Source: Macrostomum lignano (taxonomy: Eukaryota). From it: a DNA stretch of 64,000 bases. Below the pieces are notes generated by a model. That model saw only the letters and a list, made by a program, of their open reading frames with translations. It was not told where the DNA came from and made no database searches. Position 1 is the stretch's first letter; every line of letters begins with the position of its first letter. The stretch is from contig NIVC01001605.1 in assembly GCA_002269645.1 (NCBI GenBank), positions 29,218-93,217 on the forward strand, written 5' to 3'. The translations under genes were made by a program, and so were the position numbers. Of this stretch, positions 4,087 to 55,128 are shown piece by piece.

Positions 4087-4419
4087 ACAGTATAAATTAC
4101 CATTCTATTAATTTAGAATGCACACTCCAACCAATAAATTTGCGCTTAAGTTAGCAAAGTTGCAATCGCTGCAATCTTTTCTTCCTTTTTACATCAAGTA
4201 TATTTGTAAAAAAAATTCGCATGCAGGTACTCTTAAGCCATGCAAGAATGCTAGTTATATTAACTAGACTAGAATATTAAATGTAGACAATTTATCAATA
4301 TTGTTTTTCATATTGTTGTTGACCTATAGTCTTTGGAAAGCTTTTAATTTTTGAGCTAGGCCTAGTCCAGATTTTTATTACAAATATACTTGATTTAAAA
4401 AGGAATAAATAAAAAATCA

Positions 4420-5920
<1,501 letters not shown>

Positions 5921-6188
5921 CCTTATTGCCGTAAAGACGAGTTTACCGAATAGAGATCAAATAAAAATCGACAAAGACGCCAAACTTTGCTCGCATTTAA
6001 AGCATGAATGGTTCTGCCGAAACTATATACTAGTTGCAATGGTATTACATGCGTCTGCGACATGCAGAACATGCAGCTTCTTTAAATCTATAAAAACGAA
6101 TAAGGGGGAACAACTGCTGTCCAACTCCAGATAAATCTTTTAGATCGCCATACAACAGCCTGCAACCCCAGCAAAAGTTGTTAGTCTC

Positions 6189-6281
6189 GTTTCCATCGGC
6201 AACTGGTGGCCCAGTAATTGGCCTCACGCCCTGCCGCCAATCCCCCCCCCCCCAGAACAGAAGCAGAGCAGCGGCTATAAA
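6189..6281 (+). promoter_or_regulatory. Promoter of glycine-rich gene 1: X-box-like GTTTCCATCGGCAAC (6189-6203) and TATAAA (6276-6281)
   Basis: Both motifs are conserved in order and at similar spacing in the paralog (14784-14798, 14864-14869). Confidence 0.55.
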
Positions 6282-6364
6282 CCTGTAGCAGCAAAGGCAG
6301 ACAACTCATCTATAAGCTCTTGACTGCTCACACAAGCTCCGGAATCCAAAATCCAAGTTGCACC

Positions 6365-8529
6365 ATGACTGCAGCCCGCAGTGCAGCTCTGCTGGCTCTG
6401 CTGTCCGCCCTCTGCTGCCAGTCTGTCCGCTGCGCCACCTTCACGGTGCCAACTGTCAACCTCTGCGCTATCGAACTGCCCCTTCCAGGTGCAACCAATG
6501 CCACGTTCAAGGAGGTCTCCGGGGTCACGGATTATCGGATCTGCGCAGTGGAATGCGCGGCCAGAGGGCGGCTGAGTTGCTCCGTGTTCCAGATGCTGCA
6601 TCCGGGAGACAAGGTCGGCTCGGTGACGCTGAGCAGCGGAAAGTGCGTGCTCGGCTCCTCGTGCGACCTCACCGATAAGTGGAAGTCGCAGTCGGGCTCG
6701 GGCTGTCTGACACAGCTGCTGGATAACCGGCCTGAATGCAGTGCGACAACAACGAAGACCGATTCGACCACAACTCCGACAACAAAAACCACAACCCCGA
6801 CAACAACGAGAACGACTCTGACAACAACAACGACAACTCCGACAATAACAACGGCCACAACACCGACAACAACGACAACGACTACGACCACCCTGACCAC
6901 AGCTCCGACAACAACAACGACCACAACTCCGACAACAACAAGGACCACAACTCCAACAACAACAACCACCTCAACTTCGATAACAACGCCCACAACTCCG
7001 ACAACAACAAGAAAAACTCCGAAAACAACAACGACAACTCCGACAACAACGACCACAACCCCGACAACAAAAACCGCTACCCCGACAACAACGAGAACGA
7101 CTCCGACAACAAAAACAACCACAACTCCGACAACAACAACGACCACAACACCGACAACAACGACCACAACTCCGACAACAACAACAATCAAAACTCCGAC
7201 AAAAAAAAACAACCACAATTCCAAGAACAACACGAACAACTCCGACAACAACGACCACAACTCCGACAATAAAAACCACAACTCCGACAACAACAACGTC
7301 AACCCCGACAACAATGACCACAACTCCGACAACAACAACGTCAACCCCGACAACAATGACCACAACTCCGACAAGGAAAACAACTCCGACAACAACAACA
7401 ACCACAGCTCAGACAACAACGACCACAACTCCGACAACAACAACGACTACAACTCCGACAACGACGCCCACAACTCTGATAACAACGACAACTCCTACAA
7501 CAACAACAACGACAACTCCGACAACAACAACGACTGCTGCCCCGCAAGTGTTGACCGGTGAGTTATTTTTAGCTTAAGACTCAATTGCGTTTAAAACACA
7601 GAAATATTTTTCTACATGCAAGTTTTGAGGTACAAAGTAGTCGAAATCTCATCGTTGTTTGATCTAATTTAAAAAGCAACCAACTCGCTGAATCCAATGC
7701 AGCCCCGGCCGCTGCGACCACCCAGAGGGGCAGCCTCGTGACCCACTCAATCGACGCTACCGGCTGCTACAAGATCAGCGCTTGGGGCGCTCGAGGCGGC
7801 AGCGCCGGCGGCTCCACGGTCGGCGGCAAGGGCGCCCTCGCATCCGGCCACTTCAGACTGGACGCCGGAGTCACGCTGGCGATTATCGTTGGCAAGGTCG
7901 GCAGCGACAAACTTGGCGGTGGAAATAACGCCGCTGGCGGCGGCGGTGGCACCTTCGTCTATGTCGACGGTAGCGACACGTCGTCAGCACTGCCGCTGGT
8001 TGCGGCCGGCGGCGGCGGCGGCAGCGGCTCCGGTGACGGCTGCGACGGAATCGACGGAAGCAGCGACCAGCCCGGGACGAGCGGCGGCGGCGACGGAGCG
8101 GGCGCTGGCGGCACAGACGGCAACGGTGGCCAAGCGAGGACATCGGGCAGAGGAAACGGCGGCGCCGGCGCCGGTTGGAGATCGGCAGGGGACGACGGCT
8201 CCGGCGGTAAGAAGGGCCACGGCGGTGAGAGCTTCGGCAGCAGCTGGAGCGGCGGCGACGGCGACGACGCGTTTGGCGGCTACGGTGGTGGCGGCGGAGG
8301 CGGCGGCGGCGGCAGCAGCTCGGGCGGTGGCGGAGGCGGCGGCTTCTCGGGCGGCGGCGGCGGCTCCGGCAATTGCGGCGGCGGCGGCGGCGGTGGCAGC
8401 TTCGTGGCTACCGAGGCGACGAGCGTCGTGAAGACGAGCGGAGCGAACTCGGAGCCGAACGGTCGAGCGGAGGTGCAACTGGTTGGTCCGTCCACCGCAC
8501 CGCCGTGTCTGCTCGACGGGTCGACTTGA
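6365..8529 (+). CDS. Secreted protein 1: signal peptide + PAN/apple-like Cys domain + long Thr/Pro mucin + ALK/LTK-type glycine-rich domain. Exons 6365-7557 and 7703-8529; +1 frameshift at A9 run 7201-7209
   Basis: caccATG start; hydrophobic leader MTAARSAALLALLSALCC; 8-Cys domain with CxxxC; GTGAGT donor at 7558 and CAG acceptor at 7702, phase-1 compatible. Exon 2 has GCYKISAWGARGG...LAIIVG...GGGGGTFV...PLVAAGGGG...GGGGGSF. Confidence 0.85.
6740..7535 (+). repeat. Coding Thr-rich tandem repeat (about 21-27 bp, ccgacaacaacgaccacaact-like)
   Basis: Direct inspection; encodes PTTTTTT-type units. Confidence 0.9.
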
Positions 8530-8939
8530 CTCAAGAAAAAGAAGCTGGATGTTCGAGTTTTACAACATCACATCTTCTCGAAAGTGTCAACTAAGCTGCT
8601 TCATACTAATTTACTAAGCTGAACTTTTTAAAGCCAAATAATTACCACCTACCGTTAATAATTTACCGTTTAAGACAAGGACTTTACGACGTGAACGGTT
8701 TAAGACGACAAACTGTTTTGTCGAAAGAAAATAAATAAATAAATAAATGAATAAATAAATAATACACCAGTGCACTAAAAACCCTGCTAATATCCTTACC
8801 TTTGGGTCGCATAAGCTGCCTAAATGATTTCTTATCTGATTAGTTAAAATATTGAAATAAAACTTGCTGTTATTACAATATTTTATGATAAAGCAAAATT
8901 AATATCCCTTTTTTCAGGTAAACAACTCCAAATGTTTCT

Positions 8940-9954
8940 GTGTAATAGTGTCGTCGTACTCAATCTTGTACGTCTTTAGCTTGGCCTCTCGGCTTGAGCG
9001 AGAATAGGAATAAGATCCTAACACTGTCTTCTTGAACAGTATGCATCTTGCTGCTGGAGGTTGGTTGCTGGGTTCCAACTGAGGAGCGCCCTTCATACCC
9101 CAAGCCAGAGGGAGGTTTTAGCTGCGAAGTTATCTTATATTCCTCTTCTCTGGTCAATTTTGTCTACCTTGGCATTAAAAGTGACTGCTAAAACCACTGG
9201 GGAAGACAATTCGATGGATTGTCTTCAGGACTTCTCATCCCGACTCTATTCTTCTAAACTGCAAATAGTTTACGTCGTTTGACAGGTGGAATTCACTGTT
9301 TCCTTTCACGTACATCATGCGCTTCCGAGCAATATAATTTTGTTACATCCACCGTTTCCAAGGTCGTAATTTGTGGAGCTACAATGGGCATTTCTTTCGG
9401 CGCCATTGCTGACTCGTTTGGATCCCAATAAACTCGCTTCCAGAACTGCGTTGCCCTTAGCTTCGAATACTATATTTGAGCATTAACCTTTCCCTCCACT
9501 GCAGAGCGGCTCTCTCGACCATCCGGGTGACTGCTTCTTACCACGTCAGCTCGGCCTCCCTAACCTCAATGTTTACAGTGTACTTCAGTCATGAGAGATA
9601 TATAGTTGCGGGAAATCTTAAGCGTTTCTTGTTAGCACTCAACCTCTCTATTCTTTTCCTAGTGTCTGATAACAATGTTTCTATGGGGTCACTAAGCTGT
9701 CACTCAGTCTCCCATTACTGATATGGCCCTGTCGATTCTTTATCTTTCTTAATTTCTATGGGGTCACTAAGCTGTCACGCAGTCTCCCATTACTGATATG
9801 GCCCTGTCGATTCTATCCTTCAAGTCCCCTCTACAGAGGTTTGCATAGCGTTTCTATTTAAAAGCCCTGCCTTTGTTTTATTGTGTCAGAACTGTCGGCG
9901 CCTCTCTGATCTCCGAGCGCCTCTGTGCCCCCAGTTCCCAGCCTGCCTGAAACA
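8940..9954 (-). mobile_element. LTR-like repeat, contiguous copy
   Basis: Homologous to 330-650 plus 2745-3018. Candidate TG/CA ends but no clean TSD. Confidence 0.45.
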
Positions 9955-10684
9955 TCGTGTCATTTTTGGAGGCCAGTTTCTTTCAAAAACACGGAGGGAT
10001 AAGAAAAAACTATTTCTTCATTACAAAACCAATTCTTTCAATTTAGCATGCACAGCATGTTGTTCTGTAGTATTTTATAGAGATGTGCATTAAAAGTTTC
10101 ATTTTCATATTGATGAATTATGAATTAATTTATATTTTCATAATTCATCAGATTAGCTATCCTGTCCTAATCTCAAGACCTGTCTAAATTATTAAATTAA
10201 TACATGTAAGCTGAGTTCTCAACTGAGCAGCATTAAACAGCCGCCAAACTGTGTACACAACTTTCCTCGAATCTCCCATGCAAGTTTCACTTGCACAGCT
10301 CACACTCGGCACCGTGGGGGCATACATTACATAATCAACAAGCTGAGAAATTGGGTGCAACACAAGAAGGATGATAAAATTGTTTCATTTAGTTTTGTAA
10401 GCCCCACAGCAACATTCGACCTTCGAAACACTGTTGACTCTAGAAAAAGAGTTCTACAATATCACCATCTTCTTCTCCCTGCTAAGTGTCCTTTGGCTTT
10501 AATTTTCAAAGCTAATTAATTACCTGCATGCAGTTACCGTTGAAAACTTTCACCGTTTTAAGAGAGGAACTGTACCTTGAACGGTTCAATCAATATCAAA
10601 TTTCTGCTTTCCACGGGGTATTTCGAAGGAAAATAAGATTCATAAATATACCAGTGCTCTAGAAACCTCGAGAATATTTTACTT

Positions 10685-11530
10685 TTCAGTCACTTGACTT
10701 ACTCGAGCTAGCGAGCTGCAGGGTGGTCCGTAGACTCAGCGGGGAGGTCGCCCATTCCGCTAGCCCCTGAAAGCCCGCAGACAGGCAGAGGGCAGGTCAA
10801 GGTGGTCCCCCGGTCCGTCCTGCAGCGTGATCTTCCGTAGGGGACAAAGTGGCTCGTATTGTCGCCCGAAGCAAACTGGATGAGCCGTGGGATGCTGGCG
10901 GGCTGGCAGACCTCGTCAATGGACGGAATCGGCCCGAGGTAGCGTAGCCGGTCTCTGTTGAAGAAAAAGCTGTCAAAGACAAAGTGCTCAGAACATTCGT
11001 TGTCGTATTCGCAAAAAGGTCAAAGTTCACATTCGAGGTCTCCTTGGATTAAGCAGTGTCTGGAGAGGTAGCCATGACCGGTAAGTGTCATGACCTGAGC
11101 GCGAATGTCCTTCCGGTTTTTGGTTCAGAAGGACCTTTCTGAGCCTGCGGGAGGGGCACGGAGCCGTTGCACGTGATTTCCGGCAGTTCTGGCTGCCCGC
11201 CCATCTGTGCCTGTGAGGGGAATCAGCCCAGTTATTGATCTGACGATTGATGACCGTAGAAGGGATAGGGGAACAGGGCTAGAGAAGGGGCCAGAGCCGC
11301 GTCTCTTGCAAGGGTGTCTGCCAACTCGTTCCTCGAAAACCTGCTTGATCTGGGATCCATTTCAGTCTGACAGTATTGCTACTGGCCAGGAGGTTGAGCT
11401 GCCGGGCGCAGTCAGCGACTATCCGGGACATCGCTGGTTGGCATCCAGCCGGGCTTGTTTCCTGGGGGGAGGGGAGGGGGGCAGGGGTCGCTATGGTTTT
11501 TTTTTTGGACCGACAGCAGCAGCCTCCCAA
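10685..11530 (-). mobile_element. Degenerate RNase H-containing LINE remnant (second copy)
   Basis: RNase H motif VRLKWIP...GFRG (11279-11530) and TLTGHGYLSRH. 3' UTR and tail resemble 4430-4530. Confidence 0.75.
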
Positions 11531-12199
11531 GGTTCCCCTGTAATATCTAACAATAAGTGCTGACTAACAGAACACTGTAATTACTTGAGCAAGTAAGAAT
11601 CTTAACACGACGACTGTGCGTTTCTATTTGCACCAAATAATAAATTACCTCAAGATTGAAAATAAAGAATAATATCTACTTATTCTACATTTGCATATTT
11701 GTTTACTTTTAGTAGAGTAGTCAGAACACTTTGCAAATGCTTACATTTTCATTAATTAGTAAAATACGTCTGGCCGGAGGGCTCGCGGATGCGCGTCCAG
11801 GTTTGTCGCCAGACAAAAGGGCGGCGCTGGCGCCAGAATCACCGGCTGGAGTTGCCGGGGTCCCGGCTTCAGTGGATTACTTGAGGCGGTAAAAAATATT
11901 TCCTATTTCTAAGAAGTATCCTATTTTCAAGAAACATCCCATTTCTAAGAAATATTTCGGCACCATGGCCTGCTGCATGGCACTGATTGGTCTGTCTGGC
12001 ATTCCCTACCTGTCCACCGATCTGCTCACTATTGGCTACAGATTCGCTGGCCTGGGGATGTGTGGCTACGGCCAGTGAATCATCTGGGCATTGCGCCACG
12101 ACTTTCTTTCTTCTTGATGGGACTGTCCAATGGCCTTGACACCGTTTCATGTGTCTGTGCGATAGCTTTTCGTTGGGGTTTCGAGGCCTGGTAGGATGC

Positions 12200-12552
12200 A
12201 GATTTGGGGATGTGCAGATTGAAGAATGTGCAGATTGGGGAATGTGCAGATTGGGGAATGTGCAGATTGGGGAATGTGCAAATTGGGGAATGTGCAGATT
12301 GGGGAATGTGCAGATTGGGGAATGTGCAGATTGGGGAATGTGCAGATTGGGGAATGTGCAGATTGGGGAATGTGCAGATTGGGGAATGTGCAGATTGGGG
12401 AATGTGCAGATTGGGGAATGTGCAGATTGGGGAATGTGCAGATTAGGGAATGTGCAGATTGGGGAATGTGCAGATTGGGGAATGTGCAGATTGGGGAATG
12501 TGCAGATTGGGGAATGTGCAAATTGGGGAATGTGCAGATTGGGGAATGTGCG
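12200..12552. repeat. 16-bp minisatellite (tgtgcagattggggaa), about 22 copies
   Basis: Direct inspection; nearly homogeneous units. Confidence 0.95.
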
Positions 12553-13289
12553 GATTTGACATTCGACTAGCAAAGAGGCGAGCGCACACGCAGCACAGAT
12601 GAGCAAAGAGCAGGGAATGTGCTCACAAAGAGTTCAAGGCAGCTCTGACTGTATCATGTTCAAGTAATGTAGACACTCTGAATAGCCTTCATGTGCACTA
12701 CTCGCGGTGAAAAGTCCCATGTCTTTTTTGTGCGACAGCCTCAAAAAGATTAATGTGGCCGCGCACTTTCAATCTGAGGCATTTTCCAATTTTTCTGCAA
12801 GGAATCTTCGAAAACTTGACTTAAGGCTCCAAATTTAAAAAAAAAACAAGACTATGGATAGCCTTGTCTTTAGAAAGCTATCAATTTTTTAAGCTAAGGC
12901 CTAGCTTAAGGCTAAGAGTACTTGCAGTCAACATTTTTTTACAAATATTCAAGTAGATTCAGGATAGAAGAAGTTTGCAACTTTTGGCTTGGGGTGATGA
13001 AATACTCGTAAATACAACAGATTGGCATGCTTTGCATGTTAAATTAAGACAGATTTCGGCGATTTTTTCACCTCGATGGTCAGATAAAGAATTTAGTTCA
13101 TGGCTGAGAAAGTGGGGGGGAGGGGTATTTACCTTCATCAGAAACACTACACATGTAGCAGGGATTTTGCGTATTATGCTTCATCAATTTTTGTTCCTGT
13201 TCTCTGAAGTTGTTTGATTAAGTTCTCAAGGATTAATAGGGATCGAGCGCGAGCAAATGAAATGCTCAGCAGCATTAAAAGTTGCCACA

Positions 13290-13400
13290 TTTTGCCTCAG
13301 TCACAGACCAATAAGTATTCAGGCATTCAGGTTTCAGCCTTCTTGGATGTGCCGCACACGTTGAAGCTGATTCGAAACCATTGGCAGTCCCTGGCAATAT
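13290..13400 (+). pseudogene. Possible P-element/THAP9-type transposase remnant
   Basis: FLDVPHTLKLIRNHW resembles the DVPHLLKxxRN motif of P/THAP9 transposases. Surrounding frames are broken. Confidence 0.4.
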
Positions 13401-14783
13401 TTTTTCGCCGAACAGAGGAAATAGTGAATGTAAATTTGTGTGGATGCTGCAGCAAGTACAGGAAAGCCACGGACTCAGACTGGGCAATAAGTTTTTCTCA
13501 ACATTTAGGGAGCGGCTGGTGCATGCCGGAGATGGGATAAATTTATATAAATAAATTAATATAATTTATACGCTCGTAGTCTTAGAACCAGGTGAAGGTG
13601 AGCGTAGCTATTCATGTACTCTTATTGGTGTTTGTATTCTATCTGCAACAACAAGAAAGGCCTCATTTTGTCTTACAAGTGTTTATTTTTGTTTTTGATC
13701 AATATGGGTAAACCAATAAAATAATGCTGCCCATTTAAACTGTTTAATTGCACATAAAGTTTGGGATAAATGGTTAGAAATCCATATCCCACGGCAAAAG
13801 GCAACAATAATACAACAGGCCCCATGTTTGAGGGGTAGGAAGCGAAGCCCTTGTTATCGATCGTCAGGAGGTGGGAGCTGGGGTACTTGGTCTGGTTATT
13901 ACTTATTTGTCTGTGGCCTCAGTAAGCAAATTCCCTTGGATCTCCCATGCAAGTTGTAAAACTCACACTTTACACCGCGATGGCCTTTTGTAGGGAGAGC
14001 AGTAGAAAATAGACCAAGAACAACAACTTTTTAAGAAGAATCACACGCAAGTTTTGTAGTTGTTTTCGTAATAAATTGACAGATTGACTAATTGTAGTAA
14101 ATGCCTATAGTTTATATACATATAGCGACACTGTTTTGCGATATTTGAACGTGTCAAATTATGGTTTATAGTTTCATTTAACTGGGAAAGTTTAAATTCA
14201 CGTCTTCATTTAACTTATACATGATCATAATAATGTCAAAGTGCCCAGATTTTGCTCAACGTCGGTCTAACGATTGACTTATAAGGTATTAACCTAGCTA
14301 TTAAAACTCAGAATTACATTACTCTGTAACACTGTTACGATAAAAATAGCCTTAGATAATCAATTAGCACACTGTCTGCTTCCCACTCCGTCACTAAGCC
14401 GTCCAACCCCTCATCAAATTATAAATAAGAAAAAACGACGCACCTAACTTGAATCACCGAGACGCTGCAGGGGTTCATAAAACTTGAATAGAGCTTAGAT
14501 ACATAAAATTATCTCCTAAGCCTTGGGTAAGTGATCGGGGGTAGGGCAGGTCTAGTGCCATGCTTCATCAGGATCTCAGCAAGGGCATTTGTAGCAGCTG
14601 CGAGTATATGACTGCCCCACTGCTGCCAAATGATCCTAACCATCCAATTAGTAGGGGGCTGTCCCACCCCCTAGTCACCGTTGAATACAGGCAAAGCATT
14701 CATATGGCTCCGGTGCTGTTATCTCTCTGCTGTGATGGAGCAGAGAGGCGCGCCCCACCCAGCCGCAATATTTGTTAGTGGCC

Positions 14784-14869
14784 GTTTCCATTGGCAACTG
14801 GTGGCCCAGTGATTTGCCTCACCCCGTGCCGCCAACCCCATGCGCAGAAGCAGGAACCGCCGCTATAAA
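14784..14869 (+). promoter_or_regulatory. Promoter of glycine-rich gene 2: X-box-like GTTTCCATTGGCAAC and TATAAA
   Basis: Conserved with 6189-6281. Confidence 0.55.
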
Positions 14870-14952
14870 CCTGCAGTAAAGACAGGCAACTCATCACAGC
14901 TCTTGACTGCTCACAGAATCTCAACTCCGGAATCCAAAATCCAAGTTGCATC

Positions 14953-16412
14953 ATGACTGCAGCTAGCAGTGCAGCTCTGCTGGCTCTGCTGTCCGCCCTC
15001 TGCTGCCAGTTTGTCCGCTGCGCCACCTTCACGGTGCCGACTGTCAACCTCTGCGCTGTCGAACTGCCCCTTCCAGGTGCAATCAATGCCACGTTCAAGG
15101 AGGTCTCCGGGGTCACGGATTATCGGATCTGCGCCGTGGAATGCGCAGCCAGAGGGCGGCTGAGTTGCTCCGTGTTCCAGATGCTGCATCCGGGAGACAA
15201 GGTCGGCTCGGTGACGCTGAGCAGCGGAAAGTGCGTGCTCGGCTCCTCGTGCGACCTCGCCGACAAGTGGAAGTCGCAGTCGGGCTCGGGCTGTCTGACG
15301 CAGCTGCTGGATAACCGGCCTGAATGTAGTGCGACCACGGCTGCAACAACTGCGACAGCAACGACCGCAACTCCGATTACAGCGATCACAACTTCGACAA
15401 CAACGACCACACCTCCGACAAAAACAACGACTGCTGTCCCACAAGTGTTGACCGGTAAGTTTTTGTTATCTTAATGCACAATTGCTTTTAGATATAACCA
15501 AAACATTTTCCTAGCTCGTACATGCGTGTTAATAAAAAGTAGCTCAAATCTCATTGTCGCTTAATCTCATTTAAAAAGCAACCAATTCGCTGAATCCAAT
15601 GCAGCCCCGGCGGCTGCGACTACCCAGACGGGCAGCCTCGTGACCCATCCGATCGACGCCACCGGCTGCTACAAGATCAGCGCTTGGGGCGCTCGAGGCG
15701 GCAGCGCCGGTGGCTCCACGGTCGGCGGCAAGGGCGCCCTCGCATCCGGCTACTTCAGACTGGACGCCGGAGTCATGCTGGCGATTATCGTTGGGAAGGT
15801 CGGCAGCGACAAGCTTGGCGGTGGAAATGACGCCGCTGGCGGCGGCGGTGGCACCTTCGTCTATGTCGACGGTATCGACACGTCGTCAGCGCTGCCGCTG
15901 GTCGCGGCTGGCGGCGGCAGCGGATCCGGTGACAGCTGCGACGGAATCGACGGAAGCAGCGACCAGCCCGGGACCAGCGGCGGCGGCGACGGAGCGGGCG
16001 CTGGCGGCACAGACGGCAACGGCGGCCAAGCGAGGACATCTGGCAGTGGAAACGGCGGCGCCGGCGCCGGTTGGTGGTCGGCAGGCGACGACGGCTTCGG
16101 TGGAAAGAATGGTCGCGGCGGTAAGAGCTTCGGCAGCAGCTGGAGCGGCGGCGACGGCGACGACGCGTTTGGAGGCTACGGAGGCGGCGGCGGAGGCGGC
16201 GGCGGCGGCAGCAGCTCCGGCGGGGGCGGAGGCGGCGGCTTCTCGGGCGGCGGCGGCGGCTCGGGCAATTGCGGGGTGGCGGCGGCGGCGGCAGCTTCGT
16301 AGCGGCCGAGGCGACGAGCGTCGTGAGGACGAGCGGAGCGAACTCGGAGCCGAACGGTCGAGCGGAGGTGCAGCTGGTTGTGCCGTCCACCGCACTGCTG
16401 TGTGTGCTGTGA
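14953..16412 (+). CDS. Secreted protein 2 (paralog): signal peptide + PAN-like + short Thr stalk + glycine-rich domain. Exons 14953-15454 and 15605-16412; frameshift at G4 run 16273-16276
   Basis: Highly similar to gene 1. GTAAGT donor at 15455, CAG acceptor at 15604. One extra G restores CGGGGGGGSFVAAEATSVV...EVQLV to TGA at 16410-16412. Confidence 0.85.
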
Positions 16413-16879
16413 CGGCTAAACTGCGACTCGATGTACTTCGGACTCTGATCGATTGAAGCTTAAGTGTTTTATCGACCCTACGTACCATATTGAACTGGTG
16501 TTGTGACGTAACCAGGACCCTGGTGGGGCCATTTGAAATACGAGGGGTAAGACCGATCGCCGACAACTAGATCCCGGAAGTTTGGTGCCGCTATTGAACT
16601 GAAAGTTCTTAGATTGTTAACGTTTTCAATGGTTTATCGGAGAATATATTATTTAAATTCGCATATTGGCTTTTTGGTTAGTTGTTTTGATGTCTTTTAG
16701 ATTCTAAAATGCATACTATATTTACAATGCTACTTGCACTGGATCTGCTTAGCTGGGTGCAAGCAAAGCATCGGTTTCCTTTAGTTTAATGGGCATGCAC
16801 GCTCGTGAAAGCAAATACTACATACATGTAGATGACTGTCTGTTCAATCGAGGAAATTGCATAGAAATAAAAGTACAGA

Positions 16880-18784: not shown

Positions 18785-19846
18785 ATGGGCCGAATTCTGC
18801 AGGACATTGACTTGAAAAACCTGGCCAACCGGCTTCTTACCTTTGATGTTGACGATGTTGAGAATCACGTGCCGCTCACTGCGGCTGAGTGCCTGTCCGT
18901 CTGTCACATGGCCGTCGAGGCTATGAGATCCACAGACATCTGCATCCACATCAAGACGCCAATCAACATTGTGGGCGACTTGCACGGCCAGTTCCACGAT
19001 CTGCTTCGAATATTCGACGCGCTCGGCCAGCCGCCCGAGTCGCGCTTTCTGTTCCTCGGCGACTACATCGACCGAGGCAAGTACTCGCTCGAGGTGATGA
19101 CGCTGCTGTTTGTGCTGATGCTGCTGTATCCGAACTCGGTGTACCTGCTTCGAGGCAACCACGAGACGGCCAACATCTGCTGCAGGTACGGATTCAAAGA
19201 CGAAATCGGGATGCGGTTTATCAAAGCGCAGGCGCACAAAGTGCTTGGTGGATTCGTCAGAACCTTCCAATGGATGTCGATGTGCGCAATTATAGATGGC
19301 CAGATCTTCTGCTGTCACGGCGGCATCTCGCCGAGCTACATGCTGCAACCCTTTAACCTACGAGGCGGACAGCAGGCCAATGTCCAGGCGTTGAACGAGT
19401 CCAAGAAGCCAGTGGAACCGTCTAGACCCAGCGTTTTGTGCGACATCATCTGGGCGGATCCCATGAGCGGCGTAATGAATGTGCAGTTCAGCCCGACGTC
19501 GGAGAGTCTCACTGAGGCCAAGTGGCTGCCAAATAAACGCGGCTGCTCCTTCATGTTCTCGGGCGTAGCATTGGAGGAGGTGATGCGGATGTTCCAGACC
19601 CAAATGCTGATTCGGGGTCACCAAGTCGCACAAAATGGTTTTTTGACGCACCACAATCGACGCTGCGTCACCGTATTTAGCGCGCCAGGCTACTGTGGTG
19701 TCTACAACAACGCGTGCAGCATCCTGCAGGTGGACCGCATGGTAGACAACAATCGACATCCAGGCAGCTTTTTTATTATCAGACCGACGCACAGGGACGC
19801 AGCCGCAATTAACAACCTGTTCTGGACTGAGCTCAGAGACATTTAA
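18785..19846 (+). CDS. Intronless PPP-family (PP1-like) Ser/Thr phosphatase A, 353 aa
   Basis: GDLHGQ, GDYIDRG, LRGNHE, HGGISP, WADP, NKRG, RGHQ and SAPGYC motifs. Confidence 0.95.
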   Translation: MGRILQDIDLKNLANRLLTFDVDDVENHVPLTAAECLSVCHMAVEAMRSTDICIHIKTPINIVGDLHGQFHDLLRIFDALGQPPESRFLFLGDYIDRGKYSLEVMTLLFVLMLLYPNSVYLLRGNHETANICCRYGFKDEIGMRFIKAQAHKVLGGFVRTFQWMSMCAIIDGQIFCCHGGISPSYMLQPFNLRGGQQANVQALNESKKPVEPSRPSVLCDIIWADPMSGVMNVQFSPTSESLTEAKWLPNKRGCSFMFSGVALEEVMRMFQTQMLIRGHQVAQNGFLTHHNRRCVTVFSAPGYCGVYNNACSILQVDRMVDNNRHPGSFFIIRPTHRDAAAINNLFWTELRDI

Positions 19847-21344: not shown

Positions 21345-22440
21345 TCTTAGACATTGACGTTGACGCCACCGATGAAACTATTTCGACCAGCGTGTATAGG
21401 AAACCTAGCTTTACCGGGCTTATGCTTAGGTTTGACGCCTTGTGCCCTAGACAATGGAAAACCGGATTGATTCGTTGCTTTCTTCACCGGGCTTTTTCCA
21501 CTTGCAGCTCTTGGAGACTTTTCCACAACGAAGTTGAAATCCTCACCAATCTGCTCAGCTACAATGGCTATCCTAAGAACTTTGTGATGAAAATTGTCAA
21601 CTCTTTTCTCAATGACAAACTGACTGAACCTAATCGGATGAAAGTTCGTGATTCCACCTCTGAATGTCCCTTGATCACTTTGCCTTACTTTGGTGTTTGT
21701 TCTATAGAGTTTAAAAAGAAGTTAGAAAAGCTGCTCCGTAAAGACTTAAACACTCAAATCCGTGTTGTGTTTCGCACCGAAAAGATTGCTAAGTTTGTCT
21801 GCAAGTTGAAATCCAGTGTTCCACGTCCTCTCGCGGCTGGTGTCGTGTATAAATTTGTTTGCTCTGAGGACCAGAGCATCTCCTACATAGGAAAAACTAA
21901 ACGACACTTATACACGAGGGTCAGAGAGCACTGGCTAAAAAACTCTGCTATTAACGAACACCTGCTAACCTGCAATTCTTGTTGTGAGGCTGAACCACAC
22001 GAAATGATAAAGGCTATTGATTTTTGTAATAGAGATCACATGCTCTGCCTATTAGAAGCCCTGTACATTAAGACCAAACAGCCCACGTTAAATAACCAAC
22101 TTGCGATGGGTGGGGCTAGCCGTCAACTCAGAATTTTTTAGCTGATTTGTCAATGACCGGACTGGCTTGAAACTGATATGCACTTTACCCAACCAATACT
22201 GTATCAAAAATTGATTACTATGTACAAGTTTTAAACCATCAATTAAAAACTCAATTCAACTACTCTTGTTACTCTCAACTATCTATATATACTGAATATT
22301 CGTTCAAATTGTTTCTCAATAAAAAGACCCTGACGATGTCCTAATGCAAATGGACGAAATGCATCGGCAACTCAAATAATACTTCATGTTGATATTTACC
22401 TTTATTTATCTACTCTTCATCAAGCGAGCCACTTTACCTG
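21345..22440 (+). mobile_element. 5'-truncated Penelope-like element (RT thumb + GIY-YIG endonuclease + 3' pseudo-LTR region)
   Basis: FLDID...TSVYRKPSFTG, VVYKFVC, YIGKTKRHLYTRVREH, LEALYI...PTLN. 10-bp TSD ATAACAAGTT at 21335-21344 and 22441-22450. Confidence 0.92.
22308..22380 (+). ncRNA. Minimal type I hammerhead ribozyme in the Penelope 3' region
   Basis: CTGACGA (22330-22336), T, stem II GTCC/GGAC, GAAA (22356-22359), palindromic ATGCAT stem III, ATC cleavage triplet (cut after 22365), stem I CC/GG extended by ATTGTTT/AAATAAT. Confidence 0.8.
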
Positions 22441-24165: not shown

Positions 24166-27100
24166 TTAATCGCTGCGTTGGGTTGATCGGTGCACGCAGA
24201 TGCGGGCAGTGCGACTAACATACGTCTTGGCCCTAGGATTAATAATTAGCCTCTCAGGCTGCCTACGATTCCTAGCCGGCCTACCGACATCTACAGACCC
24301 TAATGACGCTTCCACCGGAGTGGTGCATAACGACGGCCCAGGGGTCTGGACCACAGAAAAAGCAGCACTGGGAGCGGGAGCAGAAACGGGCGGAAAAGAA
24401 ACAGCAGGCATAGACGCATCAAGAACAGGCTTATGCAGATGACATTCACCATACGGCACTGGCTCACGCCGAAGTGCACTTGCCTGGTTCGCTGGTGTCG
24501 TGACCGGTCCACCTCCTGGCTGCACCTCCGGGATCGCCAAAGGCCGGAAGTGCCATCGGAAGGCCGGCCTTGCGTCGTAGCCGTCATCATCGTCATCGTC
24601 GGGGTCGTCCTGGTCGTCCTCGGGGATTGGCGTCAGGTCGCGGGTCCTGCGCCGTCGGGGACGTCGGGCGGCCGCCGGCGTTTCTTCGGTTTGTCGACTT
24701 CAGGGTCCGAAGTTCTCGTGTAGTCAGCGTCAGGCACGAGCAGAAGGTTCCGGCGATGGACGACTAGTTCGTCTCGTCTAGCTCTCGGGTTTGGCAGTCT
24801 CCGTCGAATCTTGTAGACGACCTCGCCCTTGGGCTCGACGACTTCGTATAGGGCTTTGCGAGGTCGATGAAACTTCGCCGCCTCATCCGGTTCGAGTACC
24901 GGGTTGTTGAGGAAGACCAGATCTCCGGGTTGAAGCTTCTTGGCGACGGGCAGGTTCGAATAGTGCTCGTCTCGCAATTGCTGGTGCAGGTGCAGGCGCT
25001 CCTTGGCCAGCTCAGTCGCCTCGTCCAGGCGACGTTGGAAGTCCTTGACGTAGTCGGGCAGGTCGGCGTACTCGGGCAGCTTCTTCAGCGCGTTGTCGAT
25101 CGGGAGTCGGAAATCACGGCCGAACACCAGGTAGTGAGGCGTGAAGCCGGTCACCGGGTGCACGCTGGAGCGGAGAGCCATCAGACAGGCCGGGAGGAAG
25201 GTGTCCCAGTCGTTGTGGTTGCGCTCGAGCAGACAGGTGAGGACACTCTTCAGCTGTTTGTTGAGGTTCTCGACTTGTCCGTTGGAAGCTGGATTGTACG
25301 GTGTTGTTGTCGTATGCCGAATGCCAAACAGGTCGCAGAACTTCTTGAAGGCTGAGCCGGTGAAGTTGGTGCCTTGGTCAGTGTGGATCCAGCATGGTAC
25401 ACCGAACTCGGGGATGAAGCGCTCCTGCAGAAGCTTGATGACTGTTTTGGCTTTCTGGTTTCTCATCGGGTAGGCGAATGGATACTTCGACGTCGCATCG
25501 CACAAGGTCAGGATGTAGCGGTTGCCGCTCTTGCTCTTCTGCGCGATTGGTCCTACTACATCACAGTGGATTCTACCCAGAACTTCGCAAACTGGGAAGC
25601 TCTGGACCGGAACTCTCTCTCGCCGTCGCGATTTACTTTCAAGGCAAGTGCGGCACTTACTGATGAAGGTCTTGGTAGCACGGGCTAATCCGGGTCTCCA
25701 GAACCGTTCTCGTAGCCGCAGTAACGTCTTCGTCTCGCCGAGGTGTCCACACAGTGGCGAACTGTGGAGCTCCTGGAGCACCTGGGCGTCAAGGGCCTCA
25801 GGCAGAACAACCTTTGGCGGCTGCTGGCCATCGGACAGGTCAATCAGCAGCAGGCCGTTGTCCTCCTGCAGGTTCTCATAGTATCCGAGCAGGTTCCGCT
25901 GCTCCTTCGTCAGGCGCAACCGGGCGTCGAACTCAGGCTTCGGGGCTTCGTTCTTGACCAGGTTGAGCACGTAGCTGATGGCTCGGTCAGCGCGCTGGGC
26001 TTCAACGAACTGTTGGCGAGTCATCGGCAGCTTCAGAAAATCAGTGAGCACAGCGCGGCATGGCTGAGGGGTCCGGATTCCCGCAGTCTCCGCTTTAATG
26101 GCTCCAGGTCGATCACACGGCACCGTCTTGTCGGCGTCAGGATTAGGTCGCTCCGAGGGACTTTGTCTCGCAACGTCGGCGTACGTCCGTTGATCTCGTT
26201 TCGAAGTTCTCATCGTCGCTCTATTGACAGAAAAATCCGCAGATGGAGCAGTGCACATGCCTCCACTGCCTAGCCCAGGCGACTCTTGGCTGTAGGGCGG
26301 GACGCAACACGTGAAGCACGCCTCGTCACTGGCAGCCGTAGCCGTCGGCTCAGTCGTCGTCAAATCTGGGTGAGTCTTCTCCTGCACTGGGCGGTGTCGC
26401 AAAGGGGGAATCGACTTTCCGCACAGGCGATGAGCAGCTGTCTGTCGGCCCGGGGGACAGAGCTTCGACCTTGCAGCTGGCGCGAGATTCTGGCCCCTGT
26501 CAACATGGCGAGAGATCTCAGCGAAAGGCTCAGAAGGGTTGTACTTAGGTTGCTGTCCTGGAGTTGCGTTGCGGGCCGTCATCAGAAGGGCTGCTGGCGC
26601 GGTGGCCTTTGAATCTTGGTCCGTGGGCGTCTCCAGATTCCGAGACCGGAAGTCTTGGGCGTCGTCAAGGAGGTCTGCTTCGGCGGTGGCCTCTAGGACT
26701 TCGTCCAGGTTGGTCTCCAGGTAACGGCAGTCGGCGTGGGCATCGCTGCAGAGGGCTGTCGTCACAGTGGCCTCTGGGTTGTCGTCCAGGCCGATCTCCA
26801 GGCGTTGACTGCAGCGGTGGGCGTCGTGCTGGAAGGCTGCTGGCGCGGTGGCTTCCAGGTCTTCGTCCAGGTCAGTCTCGGCCTCCAGGTAGCGAGGGTG
26901 GACAGTCTTCGGGAGGGCTGCTCTGGCAGTGGCCTCGGGTGTCGCGTCCAAGTCCGTCTCCAGGAAACGTCGGCGCTCAGTCTTGGGGCTGCCGCCGGCA
27001 CCGGGTTGGGCTGTAGAACCAGGTTGCTTTAGCAGTCGGCCATGCTCGAAGTTGATCGGTGGTGTCTCCGGTCTTCTTGACAGGGCGTCGGCGTTGGCGT

Positions 27101-29483
27101 GGTCCTTGCCTTTGCGGTGGTTAAGCTGGAAGCGGAACTCGCTAAGGCGTTCGATCCAGCGGCCTAAAATACCTGTGGCCTGAGTTTGGTTCAGTAACCA
27201 CAGTAAGGCCCGATGATCGGATCGAACTTCAAACTTCTTGCCGATTAAGTAATGACGGAAATGTCGCATAGCGTCCAAAATTGCAAGCAGCTCTTTCTTC
27301 GTGACCGTGTAGCGCTTCTCAGGATCGCGAAGTTTACGGCTAAAGAACGCAATTGGACGTTCGACGCCGTCGGATTGCAGTTGTCCAAGGCAAGCGCCTA
27401 TTCGAATATCAGAGGCATCCGTGTCGAGGACAAACTTCACTGCAGGATCAGAATTAAACTCAGGCAGAGCGAGAACTTCAGTAGAACACAGTTTCTTCTT
27501 CAGAGTGTCGAACGCGTGCTGATGCTCAGGAGTCCAGTGCTGCCGCAGGCTGCCAATGTCCTTTCGCGTCAGGGCATGCAGCGGCGCAGCCACTCCAGCG
27601 TAGCCGTCGACAAACTTGTGGTAGTAATTGGCGAGGCCTAGGAATTGTCTCAGTTGAGTAACGGACTGTGGCACGGGCCAATCACGGATCTGCGCAATCT
27701 TGTCCTCACAGGTCTTCAGGCCGTCGGGAGTCACGACGTGACCTAAATAATGCAGCTCCTTGAGGAACAAATGACACTTCTTCGGTTTCACTTTGAGGTT
27801 GGCTGCGATGATGCGCTGGAGTACAGTTCGCAAGTTATCCAGCTGTTCCTCGAAAGTCACTGAGTGCACCACGATGTCGTCCATGTAGCCAAGCGCAGTC
27901 TTTGGCGTCAGGCCGTCCAGGAGCTTATTGATGCAACGCTGAAAGCTGCCGGGACTATCGTGGAGACCCATCGGTAGAACGTTAAAACAGAATTGGCCGC
28001 GGTCGATTACTGAGAACGCCGTCAGTGCTGGTCGCAGTCCGCAGCGGGATCTGCCAGAATCCTTGAGCAAGGTCCAGCTGGAATACCACTGAGCACCACG
28101 AAGCTTCGCGAAGGTTTCCTGGATGTGCGGCAGCGGATACGGGTGATACACACACCTATCGTTGAGAGCTCTGAAGTCGTGGACTAGTCGGATGTTGCCG
28201 TCCTTCTTGGGCACGATGAGCATTGGCGAATTGTAGCTCGAGTAGGCAGGGCGAATGATGTGCTTCGCCAGCATCTCGTCTAGCAGGGCGTCGAGCTTGT
28301 CCTTCAGATGAGGCGGGATTCGGCGCGGTGGTAGCGCAACTGGTGTCCGGTCCTTCAAGATGATCTCGTGGGTCACCAGGTGAGTCAGGCCGGCGTCTAG
28401 CGAGTGCTTGGAGAAGGCCGTTTGACATTCGACTAGTAGATCTCGCACTCTTTGATGTTGTTCTTTGGACAATTCGCTGTTGATCTCGACTTCATCTAGC
28501 CATGCTGTGCTGGACTCTTCAGAGTTCTTCGGGAGATGTCGCACTTCAGGTTCTGGCGTCTCGCTCAAGTACATCAGGTCGGCAGTTCGGAGTGGCGTCG
28601 CGACACCAACACGGATACCGGCTTGCAGAAACACTTCGCTGTCAGCGGTGTTGACGACCTCAATGTAGCCGCGACCTTCAGGCATCGTCATCAGAGCAGG
28701 CGCTGCTTCCAGAGCGTTGCAGCTGGGATGCAGCCTCGACTTAACCAGCTCGACAATTGATGGCGATCCTCGATTCTCAGGGTGGCCGTCATCCAGTCTG
28801 ACGGCAAGCAACGCTGAACTTCTAGGCGGCAGGGTGCACTTCTCGGAGGTGTACACTCGGCAGTTCTGAAGCTCACGACGCGAATAGCGAACGGGGATGC
28901 ACGCGCCGTTGTTAAACTTCAACATTCCTTGAGCGAAGTCCAAGTTCTGGCAGTGCTCTCGCATAAACGATACGCCAAGCAAGTTTTCACAATCGGAGAC
29001 CGTGACGAGGAATTCGGTGTCCGCGACGACATCACCGAACTCCACCGGAATGGTCACCTTACAAGCAAGTGGGAGCTGCGTCCCATCATACATAGTTACG
29101 CAATCGGGAATAGCATGCGATATAATACAACGAGGCATCCGACGTCTAATAGCGGCCCAGGTTGACGAACCAAGAAAGTTTTTCCGGCTGCCGCTGTCAA
29201 GCAAGAAAGGGACCTCTCGACTCGCAACTCGACCTGTGACGTACGGATCGGCCTCACGCGCATGGATTTTTTGATTCGGGGAGGTGTCCACGAAACCTCC
29301 GCACTCCGCGTCACTTACTGACGAGTGACTGTCGGACTGGGCATTGGCGCCTGCACAGCCGACATTCTCTTCTTCTGGTGACCTCTCGGATTCTGCCAAG
29401 TAGCCTGGGCTTGGACCTCGCGGAGGGCGGTGCCGTTGTCGCTCTCCGCCTGGCCGTTTCCCTGGTTCTGGCGCATCGGGCAC
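24166..29483 (-). CDS. pol: Gypsy Pol (protease, RT, RNase H, ~340-aa insert, integrase), probably extending to 24166 after a 1-bp fix at G4 24657-24660
   Basis: LLDSGS, YMDD, TDASD, RSDHRAL, HSSPLCGH...CRTC, HCDVVG, HTDQG, SNGQVE. The downstream frame gives an acidic tail and RPARNRRQPERL, typical of Gypsy IN C-termini. Confidence 0.93.
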
Positions 29484-30639
29484 TGGGCGTTGCGATGACC
29501 GGGCTGTCCGCAGCTATAGCAGATTATAGCTCTCTTTGGCGGGCTGGCTACCTGCTGTTGGTCACGCTGCACCAGGTGATCCAGCATTCGCTGCTGCTTC
29601 TCATCAAGTCGGTTAGAGTCAGTAAGGCTTGGGCGGTGACGTCGGGTTTCGGGTCGCCGTCCTCCTCCCCGTCCAACATCCTAACCGGGGGTTGAGCAGA
29701 TCGGTGCGCCAATTCTTTGGCGCCTTCTAGTCGTCGTAGCTCTCGAATCGCAGCAAGAAGATTGTTCGGGCGAACCCAGTACAGCCGTTCGCGCAGATCT
29801 GGAGTCGTCCGGATACCAGCAAGAAATTGATCAGTAATCTCCTTCTCGCGGTCTTCAGGATGCATTCGAGGATATGCACGTTCACCCAGAGTTCTCAGGG
29901 CGTCAGCGAACTCTTCTGCTGACTCATTCTTGCCTTGTTGACGACGCCTAAACAGCTCTCTATACTCATCAGCACCACCATGACGGGCAAATCGCTCAAT
30001 CAGACGCTGCTTGACCTCCTCGTAGCTGGCGAAACGCGGGAGTTTCATACTAAGCAAAGAAGGATATGCAGTAGCCAAATCAAGACTCGCAATGAGGTGT
30101 TGCTTCATCTCGAACGGGTCGACGATGCGCTCCATCTCGCAACGCTGCTCGAACGCGGCAAGCCAGACATGAATGTCCTGACTTGGAGTATACTTCACAA
30201 TCTTAACTTGTTTACTCACAGGCCGCTCCATCTGCTGCTGCAGAGCTGCCATCATGGTCCTCTCGTCCTGGTGCGTGATGTTCCGGCCGATGTTGTCCAG
30301 GCCTTGCAGAAGCTCGTCTGGCGGGTCGTCGGACACGTCGCTTCTGGCACCTCGCCTCGGCGTCGGCTGCTGACCAAAGTCGTTGATCGCTGCTGCTGCT
30401 GCGGCGTCCGCTGCCGCAGGCCTCGAACTGCTGATGTGCTGATCCAGCCGGCTGCTGCACCGGCTCTCGTCTCGTTCGTTGAACATGTTGAACTCGTAGT
30501 AGTTACTGGCCGATGTCGTTCTCGAAAGAGCGGTTGGCTTGGGTGTGTCGTAGTCGGATCTCACCGCTGCGTCACCAGTGAAATAGATAGCGTTTTTCTC
30601 GGGGTGGCCTGGTAGGTCTTTGAATCCCACCGCTGCCAC
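29315..30639 (-). CDS. gag: Gypsy Gag with CCHC knuckle; frameshift near 29602; likely ATG at MFNERD
   Basis: WLAAFEQRCEM, FRRRQQGKNESAEEFADALRTL. CYSCGQPGHRNAQC lies in the adjacent frame; one extra G gives LMEKQQRMLDH. Confidence 0.85.
29456..29462 (-). promoter_or_regulatory. -1 ribosomal frameshift slippery site G GGA AAC (gag to pol)
   Basis: X XXY YYZ heptamer in the gag frame just after the knuckle. Pol is in the -1 frame. A downstream GCGGAG/CTCCGC stem follows. Confidence 0.75.
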
Positions 30640-41457: not shown

Positions 41458-42160
41458 GCCCCCCCCCATCAAACACCCACCCACCTGCATCAGGAATGGC
41501 CCCATCAGACACCCACCCACCTGCATCAGGAATGGCACCATCAAACACCCACCCACCTGCATCAGGAATGGCCCCATCAAACACCCACCCACCTGCATCA
41601 GGAATGGCCCCATCAAACACCCACCCACCTGCATCAGGAATGGCCCCATCAAACACCCACCCACCTGCATCAGGAATGGCCCCATCAGACACCCACCCAC
41701 CTGCATCAGGAATGGCACCATCAAACACCCACATCTGCATCAGGAATGGCCCCATCAAACACCCACCCACCTGCATCAGGAATGGCACCATCAAACACCC
41801 ACCCACCTGCATCAGGAATGGCCCCATCAGACACCCACCCACCTGCATCAGGAATGGCACCATCAAACACCCACCCACCTGCATCAGGAATGGCCCCATC
41901 AAACACCCACACCTGCATCAGGAATGGCCCCATCAAACACCCACCCACCTGCATCAGGAATGGCACCCTCAAACACCCACACCTGCATCAGGAATGGCCC
42001 CATCATACACCCACCCACCTGCATCAGGAATGGCCCCATCAAACACCCACACCTGCATCAGGAATGGCCCCATCAAACACCCACCCACCTGCATCAGGAA
42101 TGGCACCATCAGACACCCACCCACCTGCATCAGGAATGGCACCATCAAACACCCACCTGT
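41458..42160. repeat. 36-bp minisatellite (with 32-bp variants), about 20 copies
   Basis: Unit cccatcaaacacccacccacctgcatcaggaatggc. Confidence 0.95.
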
Positions 42161-42509: not shown

Positions 42510-43571
42510 TTAGATGTCGCGCAGCTCGTTCCAGAACAGGTTTGCCAGCGCAGACGGGTCTCTTTGCATCGGTCGCAGCAGGAAAAAACTGCCAGGGGAT
42601 TTGCTATCATCGTTCAGCCGCTCGATCTGCAGTATGCTGCTGATATTGTTGTAGACGCCGCAGTAGCCAGGCGCGCTGAACACGGTGACGCAGCGTCTGT
42701 TCAACTGTGACTGATAGCCGTTCATAGCCACCTGATGGCCTCTGATCAGCATCTGAGTCTGGAACAGCCGCATCACCTCTTCTAGAGCTTGACCAGAGAA
42801 TGAGAACGAACAGCCGCGCTTGTTTGGCAGCCACTTGGCCTCAGTCAGAGTCTCGTTGCTCTGGCTGAACTGGGCGCTGAACGCGGTGCCAATTGGGTCC
42901 GACCACATGATGTCGCACAGGATGCCGGGCCTGACCGGTTCCACCGGCTTCTTGCACTCGTTCAACGCCTGGACATTGGCCTGCTGCCCGCCTCGAAGGT
43001 TAAATGGTTGCAGCATGAAGTTTGGCGAGATGCCGCCGTGACAGCAGAAGATCTGGCCATCAATGATGGCGCACATCGGCATCCACTGGAAGGTCCTGAC
43101 GAATCCGCCAAGCACTTTGTGTGCCTGAATTCGCACCATTCGTTGGCCGATTTCGTCTTTGAATCCGTACCTGCAGCAGATGTTGGCCGTCTCGTGGTTG
43201 CCTCGGAGCAGGTACACCGAGTTCGGGTACAGCAGCATCAGCACAAACAGCAGCGTCATCACCTCGAGCGAATACTTGCCTCGGTCGATGTAGTCGCCGA
43301 GGAACAGAAAGCGCGACTCGGGCGGCTGGCCGAGCGCGTCGAATATTCGAAGCAGATCGTGGAACTGGCCGTGCAAGTCGCCCACAATGTTGATTGGCGT
43401 CTTGATGTGGATGCAGATGTCTGTGGATCTCATTGCCTCCATGGCCATGTGGCACACTGAAAGGCACTCAGCCGCAGTGAGTGGTACGTGATTTTCAACA
43501 TCCTCAGTGTCAAATGTGAGCAACCGGTTGGCCAGGTCTTTCAGGTCGACGTTCTGAAGCACTCGGGCCAT
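42510..43571 (-). CDS. Intronless PPP-family (PP1-like) phosphatase B, 353 aa, paralog of 18785-19846
   Basis: Same motif set, same length, collinear with A. Confidence 0.95.
   Translation of the reverse strand: MARVLQNVDLKDLANRLLTFDTEDVENHVPLTAAECLSVCHMAMEAMRSTDICIHIKTPINIVGDLHGQFHDLLRIFDALGQPPESRFLFLGDYIDRGKYSLEVMTLLFVLMLLYPNSVYLLRGNHETANICCRYGFKDEIGQRMVRIQAHKVLGGFVRTFQWMPMCAIIDGQIFCCHGGISPNFMLQPFNLRGGQQANVQALNECKKPVEPVRPGILCDIMWSDPIGTAFSAQFSQSNETLTEAKWLPNKRGCSFSFSGQALEEVMRLFQTQMLIRGHQVAMNGYQSQLNRRCVTVFSAPGYCGVYNNISSILQIERLNDDSKSPGSFFLLRPMQRDPSALANLFWNELRDI

Positions 43572-51422: not shown

Positions 51423-55128
<3,706 letters not shown>

Follow-up and report, generated by a model that had tools for sequence, protein, structure and literature searches.

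The locus described here raises the question of what two flatworm genes do with a domain whose fold, a polyglycine/TNF-like one, tends to be treated as something peculiar to the ALK and LTK receptors, for which it was reportedly first solved in 2021. The window, a stretch of 64,000 nt of Macrostomum lignano (assembly GCA_002269645.1, contig NIVC01001605.1; all positions are given in window coordinates), carries two tandem paralogs on the + strand, gene A (6365-8529) and gene B (14953-16412), both composed of two exons and ending in a glycine-rich domain (GRD). From sequence and structure prediction, their products are secreted, non-membrane proteins made of a signal peptide, an 8-Cys domain, a stalk and a domain of TNF-like/glycine-rich (TG) fold. 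The explanation that overall accounts best for these features, with a probability estimated at about 0.5, is that they are extracellular bridging or adhesive glycoproteins and not signalling receptors.

A first-pass annotation, made from the sequence without database searches, had placed two paralogs at these coordinates. Both were recovered by tblastn and analysis of open reading frames (ORFs), and no third copy was found in the window by tblastn. The signal peptide, the eight Cys, the Thr stalk and the glycine-rich domain that it described were confirmed in both proteins by composition and hydropathy. In each of them the leader is the only hydrophobic segment (Kyte-Doolittle) and the predicted cleavage site is followed by the eight Cys and one conserved NAT sequon. 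The introns are short (145-150 nt), of GT..AG type and in phase 1, and are located at the domain boundary in both genes, so that exon 2 encodes in each case a product of 275 amino acids (aa) with 35% Gly. The duplicated block corresponds to the gene and ca. 190 nt upstream of it (6171-8519 versus 14765-16415). Between A and B the exons are 94-97% identical, the intron 76% and the conserved 5' flank 86%, with similarity ending upstream of ca. 6171 and the 3' flank being unalignable past the stop. A TATAAA box and an inverted CCAAT motif occur upstream of four copies, namely A, B and the copies of B on L003 (NIVC01001474.1) and L004, which are homeologous or allelic contigs with 93-98% identity; this conserved flank is a putative promoter. 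A minisatellite of 16 nt x 22 is found between the two genes.

Compared directly with the Pfam profile ALK_LTK_GRD (PF12810), the GRD of the window proteins scored 12.7 bits (E = 0.12), below the gathering cutoff of 24.5, and was collinear with positions 7-197 of the 243 of the model. The M. lignano paralog P0136 reached 23.0 bits, and P0218, a longer model belonging to the P0136 cluster, 24.9 versus 24.5. The shortfall of the window GRD can plausibly be attributed to the composition-bias penalty. When PDB sequences were searched with phmmer, the eight best matches were ALK/LTK ectodomains, and so was every significant one (E 0.0035-0.017). Much higher similarities were detected by phmmer with P0063 (E = 1.8e-90) and P0064 (E = 2.3e-70), and the top homologues themselves pass PF12810 with 58-103 bits, those from P0063 to P0070 with 62-103. 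The exhaustive HMMER search collected 3091 relatives of the GRD, 658 of which have E <= 1e-10.

The structure predicted for the GRD with AlphaFold2 (AF2) from 58 sequences has a predicted local distance difference test (pLDDT) value of 89.7 and a predicted TM-score (pTM) of 0.89, with strands at residues 11-102 and 240-263, residues 103-239 being confidently modelled without helix or strand. All 21 significant matches of this model in the PDB (Foldseek) correspond to TG/GRD structures of ALK/LTK, with probability 1.00, E-values from 2e-9 to 4e-5 and TM-scores of 0.47-0.56, while the next match has an E-value of ca. 1. The fold is thus the one found in ALK/LTK (PDB 7NX1, 7NX0, 7NWZ, 7LRZ, 7LS0, 7N00 and 7LIR), collinear over the whole domain. 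The ALK/LTK TG domain and the window GRD have in common a beta-sandwich formed by their N- and C-terminal strands, between which runs a long glycine-rich insert devoid of strands. The ALK GRD has been described as a bundle of fourteen polyproline type II (PPII) helices (PMC11364801), and the core of the ALK/LTK ectodomain as the combination of TNF-like, glycine-rich and EGF-like modules (PMC10605310). The window GRD therefore belongs with PF12810 by transitive homology and by fold, while its direct score remains below the gathering threshold. The first-pass proposal of a glycine-rich domain of ALK/LTK type, for which an unlike fold had been named as the refuting outcome, is borne out by AF2 and Foldseek, and the assignment of the predicted domain as an ALK/LTK-type TNF-like beta-sandwich with a putative polyglycine type II (PGII) insert can be regarded as sound.

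Both sequence scores and the model place this GRD much closer to non-receptor GRDs, and to one from Monosiga, than to ALK/LTK. With ALK/LTK it has 21-26% identity, ca. 20 bits and a TM-score of ca. 0.5, whereas E-values from 1.8e-90 to 1e-16 are obtained with non-receptor PF12810 proteins of bacteria and phages and with the multi-GRD receptor kinase XP_001748072.1 of Monosiga brevicollis; the match to a bacterial PEP-CTERM protein, for instance, reaches 108 bits. These relatives are extracellular, surface or virion proteins and are thus found outside the cell, as predicted for the window proteins. Their partner domains are PKD, Ig-like, PEP-CTERM, type IX secretion system (T9SS) tail, Hint and tail collar in bacteria and phages, or EGF and kinase in Monosiga, and none of them has the 8-Cys domain or the mucin stalk. 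In BFVD, the best two matches to the GRD model are an unnamed entry (TMq 0.73, E = 9e-14) and a protein of an uncultured phage (TMq 0.66, E = 6e-12), while cyanophage and Caulobacter-phage proteins, some of them carrying virion structural or tail-collar annotations, match at lower scores. Many phage and giant-virus proteins were found to carry the GRD fold among the BFVD matches, and several viral GRD proteins have been automatically named "receptor protein-tyrosine kinase" in UniProt, which is evidently a rule-based mislabel derived from PF12810.

The absence of a transmembrane segment and of a kinase domain, noticed in the first reading, was confirmed by hydropathy and Pfam, together with a conserved stop. 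The window proteins also differ from ALK/LTK in having no EGF-like module, MAM or LDLa domain, and in that their GRD forms the C-terminus of a secreted mucin-like protein. They consequently lack what defines the ALK/LTK receptor kinase family, that is a transmembrane segment with a kinase and a membrane-proximal EGF-like module. The stop lies no more than 12 residues after the last strand of the GRD, and in all five paralogs it occurs just past the final conserved Cys. Since the exon junction is shared with other copies (see below), the stop is conserved and no further hydrophobic segment exists, splicing onward to a transmembrane/kinase exon is argued against. The next + strand gene 3' of B encodes a PP1-type phosphatase having its own ATG. 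A 1892-aa model that contains P0001 (P0216) had suggested an onward fusion; it is a chimera with pyruvate kinase, not with a receptor kinase, and was rejected.

The N-terminal domain spans ca. 100 aa and that of gene A is 54% identical to its counterpart in P0001. Its motif CAVEC-x7-CSVFQ...CVL and the eight Cys are conserved among the paralogs and resemble a PAN core. No Pfam match to PAN was obtained at E <= 10 for the window domain or for the paralogs P0001, P0089 and P0136, and a profile of this domain family had no match among PDB sequences. Its AF2 model has a pLDDT of 56.5 overall and of 70-77 in the core, where the order of elements is strand-helix-strand-strand, and Foldseek returned only non-significant matches to HGF N-domain structures (E = 3-5). 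Alignment by hhalign with five PAN domains gave a probability of 22% in the expected register. Word-indexed searches with the domain or with a five-sequence alignment found nothing, the known paralogs being missed as well. The name "Apple domain-containing protein" given to paralogs in UniProt implies that some other profile matched; this match was not reproduced. The PAN-like assignment made in the first-pass annotation thus went without confirmation by Pfam, fold comparison or hhalign, and a PAN-like N-terminal domain is plausible but unproven. The end of the domain (6690-6745 in A and 15278-15333 in B) reads C-LTQLL-x5-C, which we take to resemble the C-[VL]-TQL start of the apple domains of factor XI and prekallikrein; it may be what is left of a second apple repeat, or may have arisen by chance.

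These two domains are connected by a stalk whose length differs greatly between the genes. In A, Tandem Repeats Finder (TRF) identified a 21-nt repeat in ca. 35 copies (6767-7531) which, once the frame is corrected, encodes ca. 270 aa with 71% Thr and 12% Pro, whereas the stalk of B has ca. 40 aa with 53% Thr; the difference results from expansion of the repeat in A. The stalk is a Thr/Ser/Pro-dominated tandem-repeat tract and is in this respect mucin-like (PTS type). From its composition and the predicted secretion, it would be densely O-glycosylated and form a stiff, rod-like spacer.

On sequence grounds, genes A and B, which have so far no annotation, fall in a small family of M. lignano paralogs together with A0A1I8IMG2 (P0001), PAA57358.1/A0A267E764 (Mlig028980g1; P0089) and PAA61162.1/PAA91998.1/A0A267H149 (Mlig019850g1/g2; P0136). 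All three have a signal peptide, the Cys domain and the GRD, and end after the final Cys, as do A and B. They are divergent paralogs and not the same genes, and they have no Thr/Pro stalk; the long mucin stalk is the new element. P0001 is collinear with the window protein from the Cys domain into the beginning of the GRD (38% identity, E = 8e-26), and over the 275-residue GRD the HMMER alignments cover residues 20-265 in P0089 (50% identity) and 19-266 in P0136 (46%). No characterised protein with the architecture of A and B was found, in agreement with the first-pass annotation, which knew of none; the combination of a Cys domain with a GRD is nevertheless not unprecedented, since these three uncharacterised M. 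lignano paralog groups have it. A comparable layout is seen in coral proteins named "leukocyte tyrosine kinase receptor-like" (Pocillopora P0016 and Stylophora P0043), which are secreted, have no kinase and contain a single GRD after small Cys-rich modules. In these an EGF domain takes the place of the stalk, the similarity is weak (E ~1e-7 to 1e-4) and the PAN likeness of the N-terminal Cys segment is impressionistic. In the secreted apical matrix protein LET-653 of Caenorhabditis elegans, a mucin linker rich in Ser/Thr connects an N-terminal domain of PAN/Apple type to a ZP domain at the C-terminus. Its layout is only analogous to that of A and B, with a ZP domain instead of a GRD and no homology beyond the possible PAN domain.

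Several lines of evidence indicate that A and B are, or very recently were, protein-coding genes. The same donor and acceptor sites yield uninterrupted ORFs of 440 aa in L003 and 434 aa in L004, and a phase-1 intron also marks this domain boundary in P0089. The two-exon structure that was first proposed is thus supported by a junction shared with the intact L003 and L004 copies and with P0089, whereas both window copies require a correction of 1 nt. When A is compared with B, the Cys domain has a ratio of non-synonymous to synonymous substitution rates (dN/dS) of 0.24 and exon 2, upstream of the break in gene B, one of 0.18, which indicates purifying selection. The L003 copy of gene B (positions 6154-6905 of L003) has lost AAGGGSGSG and FSGGGGG from its GRD by two in-frame deletions and is still open, which may mean that polyglycine elements are not essential, or that this copy is undergoing decay.

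The correction concerns a single position in each gene. In A as assembled, the reading past a run of nine A turns N/D/S-rich and out of the Thr frame, and exon 1 (1193 nt, phase 2) cannot be joined in frame to exon 2; deleting one A from this run gives a 672-aa ORF with a phase-1 join. In B, a run of four G leads to a premature TAG by which the last ca. 45 aa of the domain, with its final strands, are lost, and the gene end first proposed (16412) applies to the corrected frame only, the assembled stop being at 16300-16302. Exon 2 of B is 99.2% identical to that of L004 over 793 aligned nt, with the one-G gap as the sole gap. Rescue of gene A by use of an AG at 7726-7727 together with a phase-2 donor was considered and rejected as contrived, the acceptor at 7702 being conserved in all copies. 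Because there is exactly one lesion per copy, both lesions are within homopolymers and the near-identical L004 copy is intact, assembly error is favoured over pseudogenisation, with homopolymer errors in the long-read assembly, or else very young null alleles, as the most likely origin of the breaks.

The possibility that both window copies are pseudogenes, i.e. dead tandem duplicates whose functional copies lie elsewhere in the polyploid genome, would account for a frame-breaking 1-nt indel in each assembled copy and for the fact that A and B are without annotation and missing from protein collections. It appears unlikely given the nature of the lesions just described, and also because the conserved frames contain no further stops beyond either break, the A-B dN/dS is ca. 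0.2, and the putative promoter and the splice sites are intact. Even less can be said for chance ORFs arising in GC-rich and AC-rich simple repeats without any real gene: such repeats do stay open in several frames and on both strands, yet homology at E = 1.8e-90 with 3091 matches, a confident predicted fold, collinear paralogs in M. lignano, purifying selection in the Gly frame and conserved splice sites have effectively refuted this reading already.

If A and B are taken as secreted glycoproteins, their two globular ends would act as binding heads, so that the protein could bridge or adhere outside the cell, either in mucus, the apical matrix or a gland secretion, or by coating or agglutinating foreign (microbial) surfaces. 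Distal recognition would fall to the GRD, as it may in phage virion/tail and bacterial surface proteins of the same fold. Its role as a binding head is suggested by the bacterial relatives that have PEP-CTERM, T9SS sorting, PKD and Ig-like domains, and by the phage virion/tail-collar relatives, whose agreement with the model exceeds that of ALK (TMq 0.66-0.73). Among the roles considered in the first-pass annotation, a mucus or adhesive scaffold component is therefore better supported, the GRD being closer to non-receptor GRDs, and the ligand decoy is the weaker candidate. Several points weigh against a bridging or adhesive role. The adhesin analogy derives from the names that databases give to phage and bacterial proteins rather than from experiments, and the literature searched reports no role for a non-receptor GRD in any organism. 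The fold of the N-terminal domain is poorly predicted (pLDDT 56.5), O-glycosylation of the stalk is deduced from composition, and the full-length protein cannot be encoded by either window copy as assembled. The 15-billion-protein collection, moreover, contains no identical transcript or protein product for A or B, exact look-ups having returned no match to corrected A and B, assembled B, the ORF of A exon 2 or the L003 and L004 products.

A related reading differs only in the target, which would be non-self instead of the worm's own matrix: A and B would be secreted pattern-recognition or agglutinating factors in which microbial or foreign glycans are bound by the GRD, the Cys domain or both, in a family diversifying by tandem duplication and changes in stalk length. 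The existence of several paralog groups together with a tandem duplication, the highly variable stalk, the in-frame GRD indels of the L003 copy, which suggest tolerated variation, and the sharing of the fold with phage virion/tail proteins that typically recognise cell surfaces are all compatible with it. The dN/dS values of 0.18-0.24 point to purifying and not diversifying selection, and Pfam detected no lectin family; this reading, which overlaps with the preferred one, is considered unlikely. A soluble ligand trap, in which the free GRD would bind an ALKAL/Jeb-like cytokine and modulate ALK-type signalling, is very unlikely, although the fold is that of the ligand-binding TG domain of ALK/LTK. 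The site-2 residues of ALK are S737, Y739 and L760 (bioRxiv 10.1101/2024.08.08.607122). In the phmmer alignment they correspond to S, W and S of the window GRD, the first two forming a motif that is kept as S/W family-wide and is structural, while the third aligns to Ser. These residues fall in a beta-strand segment and not in the poly-Gly runs, contrary to the initial statement that the poly-Gly helices bind ligand. In addition, the similarity to ALK/LTK is marginal when compared to that with non-receptor GRDs, no EGF-like module follows the GRD, and a long mucin stalk and a second, Cys-rich domain would be unexpected in a simple decoy. The bridging or adhesive glycoprotein remains the preferred interpretation. 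The features on which these interpretations rely are listed in Table 1.

Table 1. Positions of the elements of genes A and B in the 64,000-nt window of M. lignano
Feature	Positions	Strand	Remarks
Gene A, 5' flank with putative core promoter	6171..6364	+	TATAAA at 6276-6281; ATTGG (inverted CCAAT) motif
Gene A, predicted signal peptide (23 aa), MTAARSAALLALLSALCCQSVRC	6365..6433	+	Only hydrophobic window; putative cleavage site, from sequence
Gene A, 8-Cys N-terminal domain with conserved NAT sequon	6434..6745	+	Cys kept across paralogs
Gene A, Thr/Pro mucin-like stalk	6746..7557	+	21-nt repeat; exon 1 ends at 7557
Gene A, A9 homopolymer	7201..7209	+	Thr frame left here; exon 1 length mod 3 = 2, not 1
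Gene A, intron (GTGAGT...CAG)	7558..7702	+	Phase 1; junction as in the intact L003 and L004 copies
Gene A, exon 2: short Ala/Thr linker and intact glycine-rich domain	7703..8529	+	Stop at 8527-8529
Gene B, 5' flank with putative core promoter	14765..14952	+	TATAAA at 14864-14869
Gene B, exon 1 (502 nt)	14953..15454	+	Open, phase 1; predicted signal peptide 14953-15021, 8-Cys domain 15022-15333, short Thr/Ala/Pro stalk
Gene B, intron (GTAAGT...CAG)	15455..15604	+	Phase 1; 99.3% identity with the intron of L004
Gene B, exon 2, glycine-rich domain	15605..16412	+	Assembled stop TAG 16300-16302; conserved frame runs to TGA 16410-16412
Gene B, G4 run	16273..16276	+	Breaks the frame; G5 and open frame in L003 and L004

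Other features of the window were also identified. Two intronless paralogs of a PP1-type Ser/Thr phosphatase (Metallophos, 353 aa) occur in opposite orientation at 18785-19846 (+) and 42510-43571 (-); the former is identical on three contigs of GCA_002269645.1, which illustrates the homeolog/allele redundancy of this assembly. Of the three, NIVC01001605.1 matches window 8785-29846 with 100% identity. A Ty3/gypsy-type long terminal repeat (LTR) retroelement is located at 24633-30639 (-), with an open pol-like ORF of 1616 aa (24633-29483) and a gag-like ORF of 363 aa (29548-30639). Transposon remnants comprise a GIY-YIG ORF (Penelope-like), an endonuclease/exonuclease/phosphatase fragment resembling a long interspersed nuclear element (LINE) and a third ORF, at 21392-22141 (+), 32994-33635 (-) and 4417-4986 (-), respectively. 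The region 44444-46318 (-) encodes in a single ORF a multi-pass membrane protein of 624 aa with a weak match to Otopetrin that is above the cutoff (33.4 bits). An ankyrin-repeat ORF (51399-52193, +) lies on a 99-nt tandem repeat (51709-52263), and the ORFs found beside it at 53606-54887 had no Pfam match. Finally, numerous minisatellites, well conserved and with periods of 15-42 nt, were detected, at 12197-12556, 41464-42157, 48445-49008, 49954-50343, 56689-57566 and 57770-58269; they give rise to long spurious ORFs on both strands.

These data have implications for annotation as well as for the GRD family. Genes of low complexity that contain homopolymers are easily lost to annotation in long-read assemblies through single-base frame errors. 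We know of no non-receptor PF12810 protein that has been functionally characterised, and in the literature on Macrostomum glycine-rich or Apple proteins and on PF12810 nothing relevant was found except a remark to the effect that PF12810 has no known function. The predicted products of A and B indicate that an animal uses the polyglycine/TNF-like fold in ordinary secreted mucin-like proteins too. M. lignano is a laboratory flatworm model, and a phenotype or a binding partner for A or B would be the first for any non-receptor GRD in the literature searched. More speculatively, and we regard this as rather improbable, the ALK/LTK-type GRD may be an ancient mobile extracellular recognition head, common to phage virion/tail proteins, bacterial surface proteins, receptors of choanoflagellates and secreted proteins of animals, that was recruited late by the ALK/LTK receptors. 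If this is true, A and B would provide the first non-receptor GRD proteins that can be studied genetically in an animal, and the target of their GRD, which might for example be a glycan or the surface of a microbe or matrix and not a cytokine, would show what the fold of the ALK ectodomain did ancestrally.

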